DNA of 63,525 nucleotides, counting the filler, from Trichosphaerium sp. ATCC 40318 (Eukaryota > Protista > Tubulinea): the NCBI GenBank assembly GCA_038496445.1. It is 4 parts of 4 records of this genome, joined end to end, with 100 filler letters (N's around TTAATTAATTAA, not from the genome) between each part and the next. Parts side by side here need not be neighbours in the genome. Positions count along the whole stretch, not along the records: positions 48,605 to 60,289 come from JALMLS010000393.1; 3 more parts are not named here. One strand, given 5' to 3'. Every line of letters begins with the position of its first letter. Position 1 is the first letter of the stretch. A model generated the notes under the pieces. That model made no database searches. It was not told the DNA's origin and saw only the letters and a list, made by a program, of their open reading frames with translations. This document shows positions 48,605 through 60,289 of the stretch, one piece after another. The translations under genes were made by a program, and so were the position numbers.

Positions 48605-48722
48605 TCGTGTTGTTTGACACCTTCAAATATACCACGTGGTAAGTGTCTGTTTCGGGCAAAAGATTGTCCTCGCTGAAAACGACTGACTGCAATTGGCTCT
48701 GTCTTAAAAAGGATTCTACAGC

Positions 48723-51002
48723 ATGCTATCGTCCATAACTGCAGATATAAACGCTCGTTTAGCAACGTACGAGCCGTGGAAATTAGTAGTCGGCGGTGCG
48801 GGTGTTACGCTCGCTGGGGTAGCGTTATACAACCACTACTTCGCTGACTTGGGTTCGTAATACATTTCGTACAAAATGGTGCTAAAAATTACGCAAGACT
48901 TAAAGGACGCGCTATTCAAGCAGATACGTAATATTCCGGGAGTGTCAGGGAAAATACAGGATGAACATGTCAAAATTGCCCAAAAGATACGCCAAACCGT
49001 GTCTAGTTTCGACGACAATCCATTGAGCGATTTACCAGAGGTACTCCCGTTTTGTTTGCTGACGGAACGTTTCGGCTCATTTTGATTGAACAACTAGGAA
49101 GGCCTTTCACACGCAGACGTAATACAGGTCATGACCAAGCTCAAAGAGAAAGAAGGCACCACGTGGAAGGATGGTTACGTGTCAGGAGCCGTCTACAGCG
49201 GTGCAGATGATCTTGTTCAACTCTCCGCAAAGGTGCTTGCATCCCTTCTCTGTAAGCTGCTAACTACCCTTCGCACAAGGCGTACGAACTGTTTTGCTTG
49301 GCGAACCCGCTGCATTTGGACTTGTTCCCAGCCGTAAGAAAGTTTGAAGCCGAAATTGTGCGCTTTACGCGAAGTATGCTCAACGGCGACGAGGGAGTTT
49401 GTGGTGTGGTTACTTCTGGTGGCACGGAGAGGTATTTTTTTTTGTTACCAGAATTGTTGTCATCTTACTTCGTACCTAGCCTATTGATGGCATGCAAGGC
49501 ATACCGAGATCAAGCATTGGCCAAGAAAGGCATCAAACATCCAGAAATGTACGATGATGACTTTTCTAAAAACTTGTTTTTGGTCAGAGTTTAAGACTTT
49601 TCTTGTTTACAAACATCTGCTTTAGTGTTTTGCCCGTTACGGCACATTGTGCGTTTGACAAGGCAGCGCATTACTTTGGCATTAAACTAGTTAAAATACC
49701 AGTCAAATCCGATTTCAAAGTAGACATGGCTGCACTTGAAGGCGCTATTACCAAGTAAGAACATCCCCAATTATGCCTTTTCCTGAATGTGCGCTCCTAG
49801 GAATACGATAGCTCTTATTGGATCAGCACCTGGATATCCACACGGGACCATAGATGATATTTCAGGCTTGTCGGACCTTGCCATCAAGTATAGTGTGCCA
49901 CTACATGTAGACATGTGCCTTGGAGGGTAAGTTTTGTTTATGTATTCGCTTTACTCTTTTTTGTTGTTGTCAGGTTATACAACCGCGCCTCACAATTTTA
50001 TGTTTCTTCACCAACTACAGGTTCACTAATTATTTATGGGCAACAGGTTCATTTTACCATGGGCAAAAAGAGAAGGATGGGACCTTCCAGAATTTGACTT
50101 TAGTCTACCGGGTGTCACATCCATCTCAGCTGATACACACAAGTACGCTTTTGCACCAAAAGGTACATCTGCGCTTCTATTCAGAAACAAGGTATGTAGT
50201 TGCATCGCACACCTGCCAAGCGTTGACGTTTTGTGTAGGACATTCGCCACTACATGTTTTTTGTAGCGACTGAGTGGCCAGGTGGTATTTACCCAAGTCC
50301 AACCATGCCTGGCTCGAGGTAATTAACATCTAAACGCCAATATCTCTGTCTCACATACGCGTTTAGGCCAGGTGGAGCTATTGCAGCGGCATGGGCAGTG
50401 ATGATGGTTAACGGCAAAAAAGGGTATCTTGACGCCTCTAACAAGATAATGCAGACCGCAAAGGACATCAAAGAAGGCCTTAGAGCCATTAGAGAAATTA
50501 AGTTGATGGGCGATTCGCTCTCGCCAATAATAGCATGGGATACTATTGACTCGATAAACATTTACAACCTCAATGACTACATGTCAGAAAAGGGCTGGAA
50601 CCTGAGTGCCTTGCACAAACCAAAAGGGTAAGTCTACTATATTACCTAACCGTTATATCACCATAATCGTCTGTGTAGATTGCATCTTTGCGTTACTCTA
50701 CGCCAAGTTGGTAAAGTAGACAAATTCTTGGCGGATATCAAGGACTCCATAGAACTCGTTAAGAAGAACCCTACTGTCAAAGTACTTAACCGCCACTTTC
50801 TTTTATTACCTCTTTTTGTGGAGTAAAGTCAGCTCACTAATTTTTACATAGAATGGCAGTGCACCAGTCTATGGCATGTGCGCATCTCTTCCAGATCGGT
50901 ACTATCTCATTTTTATTTGTTTAATACCTGACATACCTATGCGCTAGGGGTCTCATCAAAGAGATAACATGGACATACATGGATGCTTTACTGGACGCTT
51001 GA
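48723..51002 (+). CDS. SGPL1: Sphingosine-1-phosphate lyase
   Basis: [63 protein letters not shown] (PLP lysine), GSRPGG. Confidence 0.95.
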
Positions 51003-51234
51003 GATGGGTAGTTGCCACAAACAACACTTGTAACAACCACATTCAACAACCATTTGTATCACTTTCCTATTATGATTAAAAATAAATGAGTCGCCGTTGC
51101 ATTTTTATCAAAATTCAGGGTAACGGTTTAAGTCACGTGTCATTTTTTTTTGTAGCGACACTTTATTATTTCGCTTTAAAACAGTGTACATTGCCGCCTA
51201 CACCTAGGTAGTGGCTCGCCAGTATAGTAGCAGT

Positions 51235-54200
51235 ATGGAAAAATCCTACAAGGTACTAGAACGCAAAGTTCTGGAGTGGGTAGGCGCCGTACTTGAACAG
51301 AAACTCCCCGCCAAGGACTTCCAATCACTATTCGGCGACGGCGTGCTTCTTTGTAGGTACGTTGTTATGTTTAGCATCAACTCTTTTGCACATTGAGTGC
51401 GTGTCAGCGTAACAGGCATTAGATTGTTGAATAAAATAAAGTCCGGGAGCGTGAGGCGCATCAATGAAGGCGTAAACCTAAAGCATAAGTTAAAGCAAGT
51501 AGTAAGCAAACGGGTATCGTACAACAAGCATTAAACGCGTGCTAGGATAACATAAACAGCTACGTTGACGGTTTTAAAAAACTGAGTCTTGGGATATACG
51601 TTTTCGATACCATCAGTCTCTCTGAAGGCAGGGATCTATACTCTGTTATTGTGCACTTGTACTCCTTTGGCCAACGCGTAAAGAGAGCGCCTGGGTGAGT
51701 AATCACAGCCCTGCACCAAGCAAAGCTCGAGGGCAATGATATCACGTGTAACAATCTTGTAGGTACTGTGGTCCCTTCATATCAAGGGGTGGTTCAATTG
51801 CCATCGCTAAACAGCATCAAGTACGAAAGAGCGATAAACGGAAGAGCGAAAAGCGCAGGAGCGAAAAGCGACCTAAGCGAGGTTTGAGACGCCAAACTCA
51901 AGAAACGCCTCAATCCATCGCTCCTGCTATCAATGTCAAGCCTGCCACGGTAAGCCATTTCTTGGCGTTGTTGTAGCCCCTTTGAACTTACAGTCGCCGA
52001 GATACCAAAGGAACCCACACCAAAACTTAAGAGAAGATTTAAAAGGTATGGTAGTAATCGATACACTTTAAGCCATGCAGCACACTAACAGGATTCGTAG
52101 AGTGAGGCCAATGAGTTGGTTTGCTGGCCCCGCCAAAGGAGTACAAATCTCAGTAAGTGTCGAGCAGTGGCTCTGTATGCTGCACAGTCTACTGATAGCT
52201 CACCTACCCTCAGGTTCCATCTCTAGAAAAATCGGTGCAAGCCAAAGAAGCTCTAAAGCACGATTCAGGCCTTGAACAGGCAACAAGAAAGTGGATTGAA
52301 AGCGTGCTTGACACCAAATTTGAAGGGTCGTTTGCATCATTCCTGAAATCAGGAGTAATACTGTGCAACTTGGCAAACGCTGTCATTCCAGGAAGCATTG
52401 ACGGCGTTCAAACCGCCAGAAATCCTTTTGTACACAGGGTACACAAAACGCAAAAAATGAAAAAGGGGTGTGTTCTATTCACACCTTTGTACAGGAAAAC
52501 ATTGCCAAGTACCTCGCATTTTGTAAGAAGATTGGCATGTCTCAGAGCTTTGACACCAATGACTTGTATGAAGGCACGTGCCCAAAAATTTATACGATGT
52601 AAACAGGTAGCTGTTTTCTTAATACCAAGCCCAGAACAAAACCTTATGCGCGTCATCATCAATATCTATTCAATTGCTGACAAAGCCGCCAAACTTGGAT
52701 ACAAAGGACCAACAATACAGCCTGAGAATGAGGCTTCAACGAATAAGCACCTGTACGGCCTGCCACAGGATCACAAAGACGATCATGATTCAGTACGTCT
52801 TCTCTCTTGCACCCACAAAGCACAAGGGTTTTTTCCTTGATTCTACGCGTTATTACGGTGTACTAACATTTGCAATTAGACACCAGACACAGAAGAAGAG
52901 AAGGTACGCTTGGAAATGTACATTCATAGCCTCTGACAATACATAGAAATTGGTTGTGTGGGTGAACAAGCACATCACTCAAGAAAACAAAGTGCAGTCT
53001 TGTACGTGCATACTTACCTACTACGTATTTCACGTGTGACTCACCATCATCAAGTTGGCCAATGCAAACGAGGCTCTATTCTGGTTCAGTTGTGCGAGAA
53101 TCTGAGTGGAACCGAATTGATAACGTGCGCTATAATCATATTATCATTTTTTTCCTCGTGAGAATCCAGCAAAACTAAAACACTTTTTACAGCTATGGTG
53201 GATCTAAAGACATCTCAGACTCTGGCGTTTTCTTAAATTCGGAAGCTGAAACTGGTATACTCAATGTAATGGAAGTGTATCGATCAGTCACACAGATTAC
53301 GATGAAGCCTCCTCCGGTTCAAGCCAAAGGTACATAGACCATCCTGTCATGCTGCATCACTCCGATTGCTAAACCCAGTGTAGATGTCGTACTAGGCAAT
53401 AGAGATGCTCTTGCCCAACTTCTCCAATTCATGATGCAACACCTCGACCGCGACAACTACCTTAAATCACGTACAATCTTTAGAATATTTTCTTGTTGTT
53501 CAAAGCTAACGTAATATTCGGATTGTAGTGAAACAAGACACACGCTGTCTCAAGATAACTGAAGAGATCATAGAATCCGAAGAGAGCTACTTGAATTACC
53601 TCACTATTCTATGCCAGGTACACACACACAGTGTTACTAGTCGCGCCACTACATGGATGAGTACCTTACTGAAATGAATAGAACTTTGTTAAGCCGTTCC
53701 AAAGCGATCCTTCATTGCAGTCGATACAACCCTACATCAAGAAATTGCCAGATTTACTTGATATATGCGAAGAACATAAAGCACTCATAGAACGCATCAA
53801 GGTAAAGAAAGTGTTATAAGCAACCAATCAAACCAATGAGCGTTTTAGAAAAATCGTAAAGAAGACCAAAGAGAGGATTACAAGGCACTTGCGCACGTTT
53901 TCCAAAATCACGTGCGCCATGTAAGATACAGTTAACCAACTGATCACGTATTTTAGACACAATTTCTTTTGAACTATTCAGCATACTTGAACAACTACGA
54001 GGCAAACTACTACTCCATAAAGGTACTACGTAGGGAAAATCAAGGCTTGGATAAATTGATTGAGGTACACACATTACACGGCGCTTGCCTGTTTCTTGTC
54101 TTTTGCTGAGTACCCTTACAGGGATTCGAATCCAGTTACGGTGCTGGCCTCGATCTGCTATCGTTCTTGATTATGCCCGTCCAGCGTGTGGGAAGATATG

Positions 54201-55101
54201 TTCTGCTCTTCAGAGTATGCGGCCCAGTATCAGTCTCTACGTTGATAAAATTCTAGGAGCTAAGGACCAACGTACCCAAACAAGATGAAGATGTGATTGC
54301 AAAGGCGGAGTCTCACCTACAAACATGTGCTGATACGCTGAACGAGAAGCAACGCGAGTTTGAAAAAACGTTTTCAGACATGCACAAGTTGATCGAGCTA
54401 CAAAAACAGCTCAAGGACTTTGATGTACGGACGGAGTACACGCCGAATTAATGCGATGCGTGCCTTCACTAAATAACCCATGCTTAGGACTTGATACACC
54501 CAAAACGCAAGTTTGTGAGGGAAGGTGCTGTGACGTTGATACAAAGAGACGAAGAGGAGGTACCCACTTTAAAGTTTGAGTTGGTTACTCTAACACGGCG
54601 TTTCTCTTCAAGTACACTGATGAAGACTACTCCGATGAGGAAGACAGCGACGATCAAGGAGGAGACGACGAGGACAGTGAAAGTGAAGAAGAAGAAGAGT
54701 GTGAAGCCATTGATGGCATGGTGCGTACCTACTTTTTTTTTTTTGAACATCAAGTTAATCTTTTCTCAGGCATTCCTACTTTGTGACTACCTTTTGTTTG
54801 CATCACACAACCAAGCCAAGGACAAAACGAAGTTCCCTCTAATATTCGAAACATACTATCCGCTAGCCTTTGTCGAAGAGACGTGCATTGCAGACGATGG
54901 CACGCAATCCATACCTCTTACTATCACAGCCGCTAACACCAAGGGATAGATGATTGCGCAGTTGACATTACGTTCGAAGAAGGATCGATAACCTTGAAAT
55001 GTACCGATTCCGCCGATGCTGATGCTTGGCTGGCGGACATTGAGAATGCAGTCAAGCACGTCGCAGAAGTTGATATTCTATTGTTCCAGAGCGAATGCTA
55101 A
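51235..55101 (+). CDS. RhoGEF with multiple calponin-homology domains, DH and PH
   Basis: CH: FGDGVLLC, LKSGVILCNLAN, DLYE. DH: KIIESEESYLNYL, LLSFLIMPVQRVGRYVLLF. PH: RKFVREG..WLADIENA. Confidence 0.85.
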
Positions 55102-55189
55102 GTCACAAAATATTGTGGTTTTTATGGCTATGTTTTTTGTACCATTAAAAATAACCGTAGAATGTAGTATTCGATTGTGTACACAACGT

Positions 55190-56445
55190 CCCTTTATTAC
55201 AACGCCACAAGACTGCTCCTTACTCTGGTGGGGGCTGAAATTCACCAGTTGGGTTACTTTCGGTGGTAGCAACAGGTCTATTTTGCCCTGGGCGAGGTTC
55301 TTCTGGAGGAGGCTCGAATTCACCATCATTTGAATTATCCTTGTCAGTCTAGGCACGTGTTAGTAAATCCAAAAAACGTGCTTGTGCCTCTCAAGACAGT
55401 TAACATACCTGTTTCCAGTCCGTTTGTTGTAAAACTTTAAGCGCGTTGCAAGCCCGTGGTGTACAAAACGCAAAGTGCCAAAATGCTGGTATTAACTGGG
55501 TGTCGTCAGCGCCGTGAATCGCCCACGGTCCTTCTACAATATCATATGGGTGATTCTTTTCCTGTTTTGGTAGCAAACGTTAGCCATCTTTGTACAAGTA
55601 CTATATGTGTGGGGGTTACCTTTTTACCACCTTTTGTGCATTTGAGGCAAAATTCATTCCATTCCTCCAGCGATGAAAACGTTTTCCACTTGAGATTTGG
55701 GTTGTTTCTCAGCATCTCGGTCAAGTCCCATCTAAAATACACTAGGTTGGCGGTTTCCTGCCTCTCCTTGACAGATTGTATTGTCGAGGCAACTTCCGCT
55801 ACAATACAAATGATTCAGAACAAAAGTGAAAAAGCAAAGCAAGCATAATCATTTTTGCATAAACATAAAAACAGAAAACAAATGAGTAGCTGTGCTGTTG
55901 TCCACGCACCTAATTCAGGATCAGCTGTAGTGTAGAAGGCACCAGGGCTGTTCGCTGTGACGAATACACCTTCTTTTCGCCTAAATATACCGCTCTACAG
56001 GGTGTCAGAAGTTTGTCTTGTGGTTTTGTATATTTATGTGTTGGGCCTTGGAAGAAGCAAACCCTGTGCTTGATGACACCAATAAAAAAAACAGTGAGCG
56101 CACTTGACTTATTTTTATAGAATCAGTGTAGACACAACCATGCCAATGATCCTCTCCTACTGTGGCGTGACCTTCCTTGTTGACACCATATAAATGCAAG
56201 ATGTCTCTCCACGCCTCTTGGCGCGTGTGGTAGCCAGTTTGTACAAGCGCTGCCATCATGTATCCATTGAAAACACGCGATGGTTTATACTTTGGAGGCC
56301 TTGTCGGCACCTCCTTGTTCGGAAAGGCCAACGTGAATGCAAGTTCCCAAGGATCTTCGTTACCAATTGTTAGCACCAAGTCCTTGCAATCCCTCTCGGT
56401 GTTAGCTTCCCTCAGCCTTTTTGTCATGTCCGTCCAATTTGTGCC
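55190..56445 (-). CDS. Hypothetical intron-containing nuclear gene; its 5' part is replaced by the mitochondrial block
   Basis: Open exons 56005-56427 and 55542-55742 with GT-AG boundaries; no family recognised. Confidence 0.4.
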
Positions 56446-56456
56446 TGCAGGCGGTG

Positions 56457-57883
56457 TGTGATTTACTGATATTTCTTATATTTTTGGGATGATAGAGGAA
56501 GATACATGAAAAAAAAAAAAGGTCAGTATTAGGTTTTTTTGTTGAGAATTAACAAGCACATATATGACAAGTGTATTCAGTGTGCTAGTGTGTTTTGTTT
56601 AGCTTAGAAGTATTTGGTAGTTTTGGTTTAGTTTTTTAGGTCGTGGCATGTTTTTAGAATTAGTACGTATAGAGAAAAAATAATTACGGAGAATTAACAA
56701 CAAATTTTATAGCAGTATGTCCTGTAGAGCATTTACCTTGAAGCCTTTTGAGTTTGCGTCTAGAAAATGGGAGCAGTTGTTCAGGATACTTTAGATGTTA
56801 ATGATGTGTTAGAGGAAATTTAACAATGATGTAATTTTTATATATATAGTTCGAACTAAAGCAAGTTAAATGAATTTTTAATATAGAATGATTAACTAAT
56901 AAAGCAAGATTTGCGTTTACAGTTTTTATTTTAAACGGTTATGGGGATGTAGATTTAGGTTTTTTGACAAGAAAATAGAGAAAAATAAGATCAACTCATA
57001 TAAGCGTAAGTTGATCTTATTTAATCTCATGATGGTTATGACTATACAAATCGTTAAATTTTACATTTTAGTATAAGAGTAGTTTTGATATTAAAGTGTA
57101 AATAGCATTAGAAATTTTATGAATAATATAGGAGTGTAATAACAGATTGTATTGTGTAAATTATAACAAATATGGTATTTTATTTGTGAATTGATTTCGA
57201 AATTGCTTTGTTTGATTGCTTTTTTATATGTTTTCTGATATTCGTTTAGAATTGCCTTTATTAGGTTACTGATTAAGAAAGTTTGATTTGAAAAACTAAT
57301 GAAATATTTTACTGTTGGTTAGGTGTAAAGTCTATATACTTAGGTGTAATAATATAGGCTGTACTATAAAGAATTATTATATTTAGCTTTGGTGTAGGGC
57401 TAATTGTAAAGAAAGGTTCGCTGAAAAAAATCAAAATATGTTTAGTAGATGGGAAGGTATACTAATTTAAAAGAAGTGTGGTATTATACAACAAAAGTTT
57501 AAATTTAAATATAAAATGAGAAAGTAAGAATAATTTAGGAATTTTATAAGTCAAGATATTTCAAGGTTAATTTTAGTTTTTTAGGGTTATTAGGCTTGCA
57601 AAAAAAGGTGTAAAAAAAAAACAAATTCAAAGCATAATTTGAATTTGTTTTTTGGGCAAGGAGAATAAACAGAATAAATTTATTAAATATAGATTAAGTA
57701 AATTTATTCATCTAAATTATAATTTACGTAAAAATTTAGGGCGTGAGTAGATGTAGCGGTGCCAGATTGGTCTATACGGAAAAAGATGTTGATATTCTAA
57801 TATAGAAAATGTTTTACAAAAAGTTACAAGGTAATGCGTCTTTTGAGTTGAAAAAAATGTAATTTCTATTTTATTTTTCAATA
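56457..57883 (+). CDS. nad11: NADH dehydrogenase subunit 11 cryptogene (5'-truncated; needs single-nt insertions)
   Basis: With insertions it reads CDL.D...FGMDRGRY..KKRSV..VGELTSTYMTRCIQCARCV..LGFLGRG..EISTY..ELTTNFIAVCPVGAFTLKPFEFASRKWE..RLNEFLNIEWLTNKARFAFD, later SDIRLELPLLGYWLRK; 3' end approximate. Confidence 0.88.
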
Positions 57884-58002
57884 ATTTACTGTTGGTATAT
57901 TGCTCAAAATACTATACTTTTTATGAAAATATACATATTATTAATATGTATATTTTCATAAAAAGTATAGTATTTTGAGCAATATACCAACAGTAAATTA
58001 TT
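57880..58002. repeat. Perfect ~61-bp-arm palindrome at the nad11 3' end
   Basis: aataatttactgttggt...catatta t taatatg...accaacagtaaattatt. Confidence 0.9.
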
Positions 58003-58232
58003 ATTGTATTTTTCCTAGGTAATGTTTTTTTTGTTGGGGAAAAATAGTTTTATAAAAAAGTAATTATGAAAAGAAGTATAATAAAGTGTTTTTAAACTGA
58101 TTGTTATCGTAAGTTTTTTTATTTGTAATTACTTTAAGATAACAATGAATATGTTAAATCGTCAAAATATTTGCGGCAACAGGTAGAAACAGTATAGTAA
58201 TAGTATAAATTTTAAAAAAGAGTAAAAAAAAA

Positions 58233-58360
58233 ATGGAATGACAAATAGTATTAGCAGCAAAAGTATTAGCAGCAGGAGTATGTACTGTCGGTGTAGGAGG
58301 AGCAAGTATAGGTATAGTTTTTTATTTGTTTTCTTATAAATATAGTTTTAATTTAATGGA
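58233..58360 (+). pseudogene. atp9: ATP synthase subunit 9 N-terminal fragment/cryptogene
   Basis: ME(TGA)QIVLAAKVLAAGVCTVGVGGASIGI, then g[G]t..g[G]t gives GFLFGFLI; no RNP loop or second helix recognisable. Confidence 0.65.
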
Positions 58361-58631
58361 AAAAGTATATTAGAGTGAATAGGTTCTTTTGGTATTTATA
58401 ATGTTGGGTTCAAAATATAAATAAAAGAGAAATATTGTGGAAAGTGTGATATTTATAAATATTTGATTTTGTAGGTTTAGGGTTTTTTTTTTTACATTAA
58501 TTATTAGTTATAATTTATTTTTAATTTTAATTTTTATAATATTTTTTATATGAATATTAACGATTTTTTTTTTGCTTTTTTATAACAATGTTATAAAAAA
58601 GCAAAAAAAAAATGTTATTATGTTATGAGGA

Positions 58632-59570
58632 ATGGATCCTATGGCGTTAGCTGTGGGAGGTATTGGGTATGTAGACATAGGTTTTGGTTTTGCAGCCACT
58701 TGTATTATAGGAGTAATAGTAGGCGTGATGGTGGTAGTAAATAGAAGATCAGCATCAGAAGAAGGAGAAAAAAATATAGAAGGAGAAAAGAAAGAAGAAG
58801 AAAAAATAGAAGGAGAAAAAATAGAAGGAGAAGAAAAAATAGAAGAAGAAAAAATAGAAGGAGTAGAAAAAATAGAAGGAGAAAAAATAGAAGAAGAAAA
58901 AATAGAAGGAGTAGAAAAAATAGAAGGAGAAAAAATAGAAGGAGAAAATATAGAAGGATTAGAAAAAATAGAAGGAGAAAAAATAGAAGGAGAAAATATA
59001 GAAGGATTAGAAAAAATAGAAGGAGAAAATATAGAAGGAGAAAATATAGAAGGATTAGAAAAAATAGAAGGAGAAAATATAGAAGGAGAAAATATAGAAG
59101 GATTAGAAAAAATTTTTGATTGAATAAAAGAGTGAGAATTGTATAACAGTGAAAATTTAAAAATTTATTTAGAAAACAGTGTTTCAGCATTATCTAAAAA
59201 AAATGTAGTGTGTTATATAGACGTCTGTATAAATAGTCTGAAATTGAAATTAGAAGAATTATTTGCTTATTTTAATACTAAAGAAAACATAAAAACCTTA
59301 GATTTAGAAAATTTAAGAGCAATAAAAAAAAATTTATATGATTTGATAGAAGTTTTTGACTGGCAAGCTACAGATGTAGGAAAACTGTCCAAGTATTTTA
59401 AGGATCAAATGCATAGATTTGTGGAGAATAATGCATCGCTATTAGAGGCCCGACGTGATTTATGGGCAAAGCTTTTAGAAAAATATGGATTACTGCAAGA
59501 TATATTATGAGGGATTGTTAAGTCTAGATCAATAATAAAAGAGGCAATAAAAAAAAATTATCAATATTAG
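58632..59570 (+). CDS. Mitochondrial ORF312 (code 4): N-terminal TM, acidic EKIEG tandem repeats, helical C-terminus
   Basis: Track ORFs 58632-59123 and 59139-59510 share a frame and are separated only by TGA codons; reading TGA as Trp gives one ORF ending at TAG 59568-59570. Confidence 0.7.
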
Positions 59571-59899
59571 ATAAAGAAATAGAAAACAGATGAAGCGAAT
59601 GATTTTATGAAAAAGGCGTTGATTTTTATTATTTTATAACCAACATGCTGGGAAATATATATGAATTTTTTTCTTATTTTTTTACTTAAACTACTTATAG
59701 TTTAAGTAAAAAAATAAGAAAAGTGTGTAAATTTTGAAAAAAAAAGAATGTTATTTGTATTATAAATGAATATTTAAAAAAGATAGTTATTTGTTTATAA
59801 TTTTTTATAGTTTCAAGGGAAGAAGCGAAATTAAAAATAAATTAAGTTCTTTATTTTATTTTTTTTGTTTTTTAGTAATTTTAAATATATTAATAAATA

Positions 59900-60289
59900 A
59901 TGTTAGTTATTTTAAAGTTTATATTTTATATTATTTTAATGTTTCCGTTTATTTTTGCGGAGCATTATTAACTTTATGGAAAGAAAAGTTATGGCTGGTA
60001 TCAAAGAAGGAAAGGACCTATGTAGTAGGTTTATATGGTTTATTACAGCCATAGCTGATGGGTTGAAATGATTTGAAAAGAAACAATAATTCCTCAATAC
60101 GCTATGGTATTTTATTTGTTTTTGCTCCTTGTGGTTGTTATTTTTATCTTAGTTCTTTTATCCTTATTACCTTTGTCTTTTTAAAATGTAATCATAGATA
60201 TAGATATAGTTTGATGTTGATATTTGTTATATCGTCATTAGGTGTTTATGTTTAATTTTTGCGGGTTGGGCAAGTAACTCAAAATATGC
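59900..60289 (+). CDS. nad1: NADH dehydrogenase subunit 1 cryptogene, 5' part (cut by the gap)
   Basis: With 11 single-nt insertions it reads [49 protein letters not shown]...ISSLGVYGLIFAGWASNSKYA. Confidence 0.92.

Follow-up and report, generated by a model that had tools for sequence, protein, structure and literature searches.

Organisation of the locus

The window (the whole stretch of 63,525 nucleotides analysed here) includes a piece at 48605–60289 that consists of two parts, nuclear-type followed by mitochondrial-type DNA. From about 56470 onwards the DNA is 75% A+T with 6% C and a strong skew of G over C, and this mitochondrial part contains the start of atp9 (58233), a long ORF (58632) and nad1 (from 59900). 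The main features are as follows.

48605–56438, no strand assigned: nuclear-type DNA, 39–47% GC, with intron-split eukaryotic genes
48861–50628, plus strand: extent of an intron-split sphingosine-1-phosphate lyase gene
49256–49591 and 50030–50263, plus strand: sphingosine-1-phosphate lyase exons (PDB 4q6r, 3mad; E 1e-17, 1e-15)
52199–52837, plus strand: calponin-homology (CH-domain) exon
55665–56427, minus strand: spliced nuclear gene with its start codon at 56427
56439–56481, no strand assigned: nuclear/mitochondrial join, nuclear-type to the left and mitochondrial-type to the right
59900–60289, plus strand: nad1 cryptogene, 5' 390 bases, truncated by the end of the piece; corresponds to NuoH residues 8–141, up to GWASNSKY

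Only about 12 bases separate the start codon of the expressed minus-strand nuclear gene from the first letters of mitochondrial type. Parts of 56000–60289 are contained in 23 public runs, four of which (X1, X5, X6 and X9) were compared over 55500–60289. The nature of these runs (RNA or DNA) was judged from their behaviour, not from the run records. X5 and X9 are RNA-like, with depths of 11402 and 47865 in the atp9 bin versus tens elsewhere, and in X9 nuclear introns are spliced, those at 55799–55909 and 55995–56103 of the minus-strand gene (CT..AC on the plus strand) being removed. X6 is DNA-like, and X1 is mostly DNA-like, with about 400-fold depth over the mitochondrial part; X1 may be the sample from which the window was assembled. 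Over 58379–58504, X1 has two contigs, one unedited at depth 326 and the other edited by four inserted G at depth 152, and DNA-derived as well as RNA-derived sequence is therefore present in this run. X9 represents another haplotype, with 15 substitutions against the window in 59103–59774. Its substitutions over nad1 (59846–60289) are all explicable by indels, as against 15 places in the long ORF and spacer (59103–59774), so that strain variation falls mainly in the ORF that is not edited and in the spacer.

The nad1 cryptogene

In three-frame translation, the Nad1 motifs hop from frame to frame in 11 jumps, every one of which is −1, equivalent to one base lacking. Read frame by frame, the first half gives MLVILKF..IFA / ALLTL / ERKVMAG / YQRRKGP / (ten protein letters not shown) / IADGLK, and the second half KETIIPQYA / GILFVFAP / .. 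/ LLSLLPLSF*NVIIDIDI / LMLIFVISSLGVY / IFAGWASNSKY. A frameshift-aware alignment with E. coli NuoH (L001:4466-5443, minus strand) reached a score of 244, compared to 60.7 ± 8.6 for 20 shuffles of the same DNA and 54 when insertions were disallowed; the alignment ends at GWSSNNKY in NuoH and GWASNSKY in nad1. The series ERK..G..Q.R.GP..VG..G.LQ..AD..K...KE..IP ... AP ... D.NIG ... GW.SN.KY is found in the nad1 stretch with the order and spacing of its elements kept. The in-frame pieces are of at most 14 residues, too short for a match to the Pfam NADHdh profile, and a Pfam search with the ORF pieces as they stand in the DNA gave no match.

The frame steps, all on the plus strand, are listed below with the place of the lacking base marked (^) where it can be set.

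59959–59961: step 1, GCG G^A GCA; X9 RNA has 59961 A>G, that is, a G added beside GG
59976–59978: step 2, TTA TG^ GAA; G neighbour
59996–59998: step 3, GCT GG^ TAT; G neighbour
60019–60021: step 4, CCT AT^ GTA; G neighbour, in the same ATG^GTA context as at 60188
60048–60050: step 5, CAG CC^ ATA; CCN encodes Pro with any base, and the neighbours are G, C and A
60060–60076: step 6, with TGA in frame 0 (60069–71) and in frame 2 (60075–77)
60103–60105: step 7, GCT AT^ GGT; G neighbour
60130–60157: steps 8 and 9, in a transmembrane stretch whose sequence leaves the exact places loose
60208–60210: step 10, ATA G^T TTG; a G beside G gives Gly, aligned with the Gly of 'NIG' in NuoH
60249–60254: step 11, TAT G^T TTA; G neighbour
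59920–59929: probable masked site; X1 DNA is one base shorter, and X9 RNA has the length of the window with other letters, TATTAATTTT

A sequence-only reading of this DNA had proposed a nad1 cryptogene with 11 insertions, and its listed places agree with the 11 step intervals, the alignment score of 244 against the shuffles bearing out the homology. Its count of 11 holds for the window copy but not for the real gene, which has 13 sites in 390 bases. Only 11 steps are legible in the window because private one-base differences mask the sites at about 59924 and at 60188. At the former, the X9 letters (differences at 59923, 59924, 59925 and 59928) fit an A added beside A, which makes this probably a further editing site; the latter is treated with the in-frame TAA below.

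Insertions in mitochondrial RNA

The DNA-like contig of X6 is identical to the window over 59969–60171, with no changes and no gaps, and the X1 contig over nad1 (2220 nt, depth 410) is unedited. As both repeat the frameshifted nad1, the steps are not errors of this assembly. Conversely, single extra nucleotides that are absent from the mitochondrial DNA were found in X5 and X9, and not in X6 or in the main X1 contigs. Over 59846–60289 the X9 contig has 12 gaps against the window, one of which (an A behind 59894) is common to X1 DNA. This leaves one gap per frame step and therefore no room for extra triplets of insertions, contrary to the suggestion that three further insertions nearby might remove the stop. 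The assemblies of the RNA runs contained no unedited form. The DNA and RNA contigs at nad1 come from different runs, not from one strictly matched strain pair.

Sequencing errors or random decay of a nuclear copy would be a most improbable source of the steps: the window copy does carry private one-base differences, but all 11 steps run in one direction, over most of them the unedited DNA is the same in two other runs, and the insertions are present in RNA contigs; on the uniform direction, the unedited DNA and the RNA insertions this reading was discarded. The cryptogene is real, and its insertional editing, in which G is duplicated, is of the kind described for the amoeba BB2.

The density of editing is about one site per 30 bases, both in nad1 (13/390) and in the neighbouring transcripts (45 gaps in 1403 nt of X9; 14 in 485 and 19 in 613 nt of X5). 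Mitochondrial nad1 DNA lacks single nucleotides that are added to the RNA roughly once every 30 bases, restoring one frame.

Identity of the inserted nucleotide

The inserted base is not identifiable from the sequence alone: models restricted to G beside G, T beside T, C anywhere and G anywhere scored 200, 210, 231 and 242, respectively. The RNA-like contigs provide letters. Upstream of nad1, insertions of G are found behind 58137, 58364, 58405, 58426, 58445 and 58470; each occurs in at least one of X5 and X9, and five are common to the two runs. They are absent from X6, all six stand directly before an encoded G, and at five of the six this is a single encoded G. When the five G at 58364–58470 are added, a stretch with stops in every frame becomes one ORF of 90 codons:

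58233 (ATG) to 58498–58500 (TAA): edited 90-codon ORF, five G insertions added

The restoration of this ORF by five G serves as an internal check that the insertions are functional edits.

Within nad1 itself the letter is legible for only 3 of the 13 insertions (59961, 60188 and about 59924), and two of these sites can be read through having been aligned as substitutions (59961 A>G and the TAA site). Among the insertions listed, G accounts for eight of the nine with a legible letter, a small sample. In addition, G is the direct neighbour in 8/8 of the nad1 steps that can be placed within two encoded bases, where the chance expectation is 0.54 per site and about 0.007 for all eight, and a model restricted to G beside G gives an open frame across nad1. 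The earlier statement that most nad1 sites need not be G-adjacent does not survive the neighbours of the tightly placed steps, and its corollary, that collapse of GG does not explain nad1, is contradicted by the same neighbours together with the open G-beside-G frame. The added letter is G beside an encoded G wherever it is legible, and once probably A beside A; by analogy with the mechanism ascribed to BB2, the mitochondrial RNA polymerase may read the template base twice.

Neighbouring mitochondrial features

The edited ORF at 58233–58500 is chimeric. Its first 28 codons are the start of atp9 (58224–58317), a repeat with high-depth contigs of its own, which in X6 and X9 runs into a normal atp9 (GIVFGGLLIA...). 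In the window and in X5 RNA, the atp9 start is fused to a different tail, in which the five G insertions give the 90-codon ORF ending in TAA. Chimeric atp9-derived ORFs of plant mitochondria resemble this fused ORF.

The long ORF at 58632–59690 (ORF312 as it stands in the window; 352 codons with A10, see below) is unedited and transcribed, with an N-terminal hydrophobic segment and three in-frame TGA. It contains a 15/48-base tandem array at 58760–59113 that encodes acidic repeats of the KIEGE type. No Pfam family and, by word search, no relatives were found for it. The region 56481–58232 is likewise transcribed, with 45 edited places in X9 and with 14 and 19 in two contigs of X5. No gene was recognised there by eye, Rfam or ARAGORN; ribosomal-protein genes that undergo editing, or rRNA pieces or tRNAs, may lie in this region and become recognisable only once edited.

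Perfect palindromes lie between the transcription units at 57880–58002, 58563–58613 and 59669–59722, with arms of 61, 25 and 25 nt, and the TAA that ends the long ORF after correction lies within the third. The X9 RNA contig jumps over 57884–57992, with nine other letters there, and contigs of several runs break at the palindromes. Rfam returned no family at the gathering threshold, with only perfect hairpins as spurious miRNA matches at E≤1, and ARAGORN returned no tRNA. Exact-pattern searches of metagenome_contigs (the TAA site with T4 or T5, and an edit-free 32-mer) gave no match. For the 163-aa and 123-aa ORFs, no encoding contigs were on record, and a homologous-protein search with the 123-aa ORF gave no match.

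The in-frame TAA at 60182–60184

Translation of the corrected frame confirmed that a TAA at 60182–60184 stands in frame between PLSF and NVIID, as had been noted. The window reads TCTTTTTAAAATGTAATC at this place. The X1 contig of depth 410 omits one T at 60178, giving T4, and the X9 contig has 60182 T>A, 60186 A>T and 60187 T>G, spelling TCTTTTAAAATGGTAATC (T4 A4 TGG TAATC). These X9 letters equal T4 plus a G after ATG. The features at this place and their translations are listed below.

60178–60182, plus strand: T5 run, one T more than in the X1 contig of depth 410 and in the X9 RNA contig
60186–60188, plus strand: further editing site, ATG then an added G in RNA; UUU AAA AUG GUA (F-K-M-V)
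Window (T5) translation: PLSF*NVIIDIDI
T4 (X1 DNA) translation: PLSFKM*S*, a cryptogene short of one insertion
T4 + G (X9 RNA) translation: PLSFKMVIIDIDI

In the real gene, the frame is restored six bases past the T run by a G after ATG (60188), giving ..CCU UUG UCU UUU AAA AUG GUA AUC.. (PLSFKMVII). In the window copy the extra T substitutes for the G of 60188, with only two codons misread (TAA AAT versus AAA ATG). The P-to-D spacing is unchanged because the extra T stands in for this nearby insertion. The sequence-only reading had named a sense codon in the true mtDNA as a finding that would refute it, and in substance this is what was found: the high-copy contig has T4 and the RNA contig AAA AUG. 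It should be noted that all four runs consist of assembled contigs, which lose rare variants, and that a low-frequency T5 could be missed in them. Taken as a whole, nad1 is very probably an edited cryptogene with G added beside G, in which the in-frame TAA is a one-base change private to the window copy.

Origin of the window copy

The extra T is one of several differences that are private to the window against all covering runs. The others are a T at 59211 where 4/4 runs have G, A9 for A10 at 59549 (3/3), an A missing behind 59894 (2/2 runs) and a rearrangement at 59923–59928; the T run itself is T5 for T4. The window shares 58375G and 58385T with X5 against the other runs, and part of its haplotype is therefore real variation. 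At the join, the contigs of all four runs diverge from the window, either at 56468 or at 56481, and run on into other letters. The last 30 mitochondrial letters beside the join still align with the run contigs, albeit at the cost of five differences, of which three are missing bases, and the next 1442 bases show one difference from X1. The depth of X1 is 2.5 in the nuclear part and about 400 in the mitochondrial part, a 160-fold jump at the join.

Two origins of the extra T can be considered. One is a faulty consensus in a contig that would be chimeric, a nuclear contig having been misextended into high-copy mitochondrial reads and poorly polished; we give this close to an even chance. The private differences cluster in runs of A or T (A9/A10, A3/A4, T5/T4), the five differences lie within 30 bases at the join as against one in the next 1442, and the depth jumps there. 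Against it stand the private substitution at 59211 and the absence of any difference in the roughly 580 nuclear bases that are covered by run contigs, which indicates that the assembly is not generally error-prone.

The other origin is a real mutation in a recent, decaying nuclear copy of mitochondrial DNA (NUMT), with at least 3.8 kb inserted, a tenable reading to which we would nevertheless assign somewhat less than even probability. In the contig, nuclear genes are continuous with DNA of mitochondrial type, the private differences include the 59211 substitution that is unseen in 4/4 runs, three of them break reading frames, the haplotype is real elsewhere (58375G and 58385T are common to X5) and the nuclear part is clean. 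However, no contig among the four runs crosses the join (contigs lose rare variants), and the private differences are mostly of homopolymer length, four length or complex differences versus one substitution, which looks more like consensus error. Furthermore, identity breaks down nowhere but within the 30 bases adjoining the join, the join falls about 12 bases from the start codon of an expressed nuclear gene, and the contig ends inside the mitochondrial part. Known NUMTs are alike in having mitochondrial-type sequence contiguous with nuclear genes and private frame-breaking changes; unlike them, the physical join here is known from this assembly alone. The run-length excess and the ragged join slightly favour the chimeric contig over the NUMT. 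The suggestion of a post-transfer mutation in a NUMT was the closest of the options offered earlier, in that the change does belong to a nuclear-attached copy, be it a NUMT or a chimeric contig.

Stop codons and the genetic code

Two further explanations of the TAA were considered and rejected. Substitution editing (U to C or A) that removes the stop in RNA, as had been offered, is exceedingly unlikely. X9 does have three other letters at 60182, 60186 and 60187, but together they equal a run shorter by one T plus a G insertion, and the shorter run is already present in X1 DNA; the RNA differs by run length and an inserted G. Among the X9 differences listed for nad1, the rest are also of substitution type only where they are equivalent to indels. 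T4 in X1 and T4 + G in X9 speak against the substitution at this place.

Reassignment of UAA, with the codon being sense or read through in the mitochondrion, draws on window letters only, namely the normal P-to-D spacing around the TAA and ORF312 (58632–59570 with UGA as Trp), whose window version ends in TAG. We regard it as having next to no chance of being correct. In X1, X5 and X9 alike, the run 59549–59557 is longer by one A (A10 versus A9 in the window), and with A10 the long ORF has 352 codons and ends in TAA. The TAG is due to the private A9, and this removes the argument for reassignment that had been drawn from it. Two ORFs thus terminate in TAA, the corrected ORF352 and the edited 90-codon ORF, and in the RNA contig AAA AUG occupies the position of the TAA. 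With TAA as the terminator of two ORFs and the sole in-frame TAA missing from the RNA contig, reassignment was rejected; UAA is a normal stop.

The situation for UGA is different. Between GGG TTG AAA and AAA GAA ACA (nad1 step 6), a TGA occurs in both frame 0 and frame 2. UGA must therefore be a sense codon (Trp), since one insertion at step 6 cannot escape both and the number of gaps in the X9 contig allows for no additional ones. In-frame TGA is read from the sequence elsewhere as well, three times in ORF352, twice in the 90-codon ORF and once at codon 3 of atp9. UGA must accordingly read as Trp.

Comparison with known editing systems

The outcome for the TAA is deflationary, as it is neither a stop-codon reassignment nor a novel form of substitution editing. 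Where a genome depends on insertional editing, a stray +1 near an editing site mimics an 'edited' frame with a stop, and copies such as that of the window are unfit for inferring the genetic code or for counting editing sites. What remains is the RNA-level evidence of dense G-beside-G repair of nad1 and its neighbours, with UGA as Trp.

Among systems that repair mitochondrial cryptogenes, calcaronean sponges insert U and kinetoplastids insert and delete U, both acting on U only. They are alike to the present case in that repair occurs at the RNA level and that UGA encodes Trp, and unlike it in the nucleotide used, as the legible letters here are G. The U insertion/deletion editing of kinetoplastids is also covered in the description of BB2 (PMC5421314). 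An ascetosporean paper describes substitution editing only.

The AT-rich, C-poor sequence suggested C insertion of the Physarum type, a candidate that was rejected on the legible letters (G), the sense use of UGA and a different gene order. The myxomycetes (Physarum polycephalum, Didymium) are alike in having cryptogenes with one insertion per about 25–30 bases (PMC3152335, PMC3285571), a C-poor coding strand and some unedited ORFs, and editing in Physarum is co-transcriptional. In Physarum, however, 1255 of 1333 sites are C and only 2 are G, dinucleotides are inserted too, and UGA is a stop in four ORFs (PMC3152335, PMC3285571), while the gene order nad1-cob-atp9 (PMC10048350) is not found here. 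The predominance of C was not seen either: there is no C among the legible insertions, although the sequence alone allows C at the remaining sites. A possible mechanistic parallel is the stuttering at the paramyxovirus P gene, where G is added beside an encoded G during transcription (PMC5421314). There, one site with an A(n)G(n) tract receives a variable number of G (PMC5421314); here, many sites receive a single G and no homopolymer tract is needed.

The closest known system is the editing of the heterolobosean amoeba BB2, with 475 single insertions in a 119-kb genome, 84% of them G and each next to an encoded base of its own kind (Yang et al. 2017, PMC5421314), for which its authors suggested transcriptional stuttering (PMC5421314). 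BB2 was the sole mitochondrial system with inserted G that literature searches brought up. The likeness is considerable: single nucleotides are added to the RNA, identical to the neighbouring encoded letter and mainly G (84% in BB2; eight of nine legible here, a small sample), no unedited form is assembled in the RNA runs, and some ORFs are unedited. The genetic system and density are not those of BB2. Sites occur about once per 30 bases here versus about once per 150–250 bases in BB2, making the present system about five times denser, and UGA encodes Trp here, in contrast to the universal code reported for Heterolobosea (PMC7900873). BB2 is moreover described as thermophilic, and its authors found no NUMTs (PMC5421314), while the present sequence occurs under several organism labels and in marine metagenomes (small word shares).

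The source of the piece is thus probably not BB2 itself, in which case the known range of this rare, G-duplicating type of editing widens. It is conceivable, if on balance doubtful, that a second lineage beyond BB2, with UGA as Trp and present also in marine samples, duplicates template G at myxomycete-like density while leaving neighbouring ORFs untouched. Such a lineage would offer a denser system than BB2 for asking how the polymerase is directed where to stutter.
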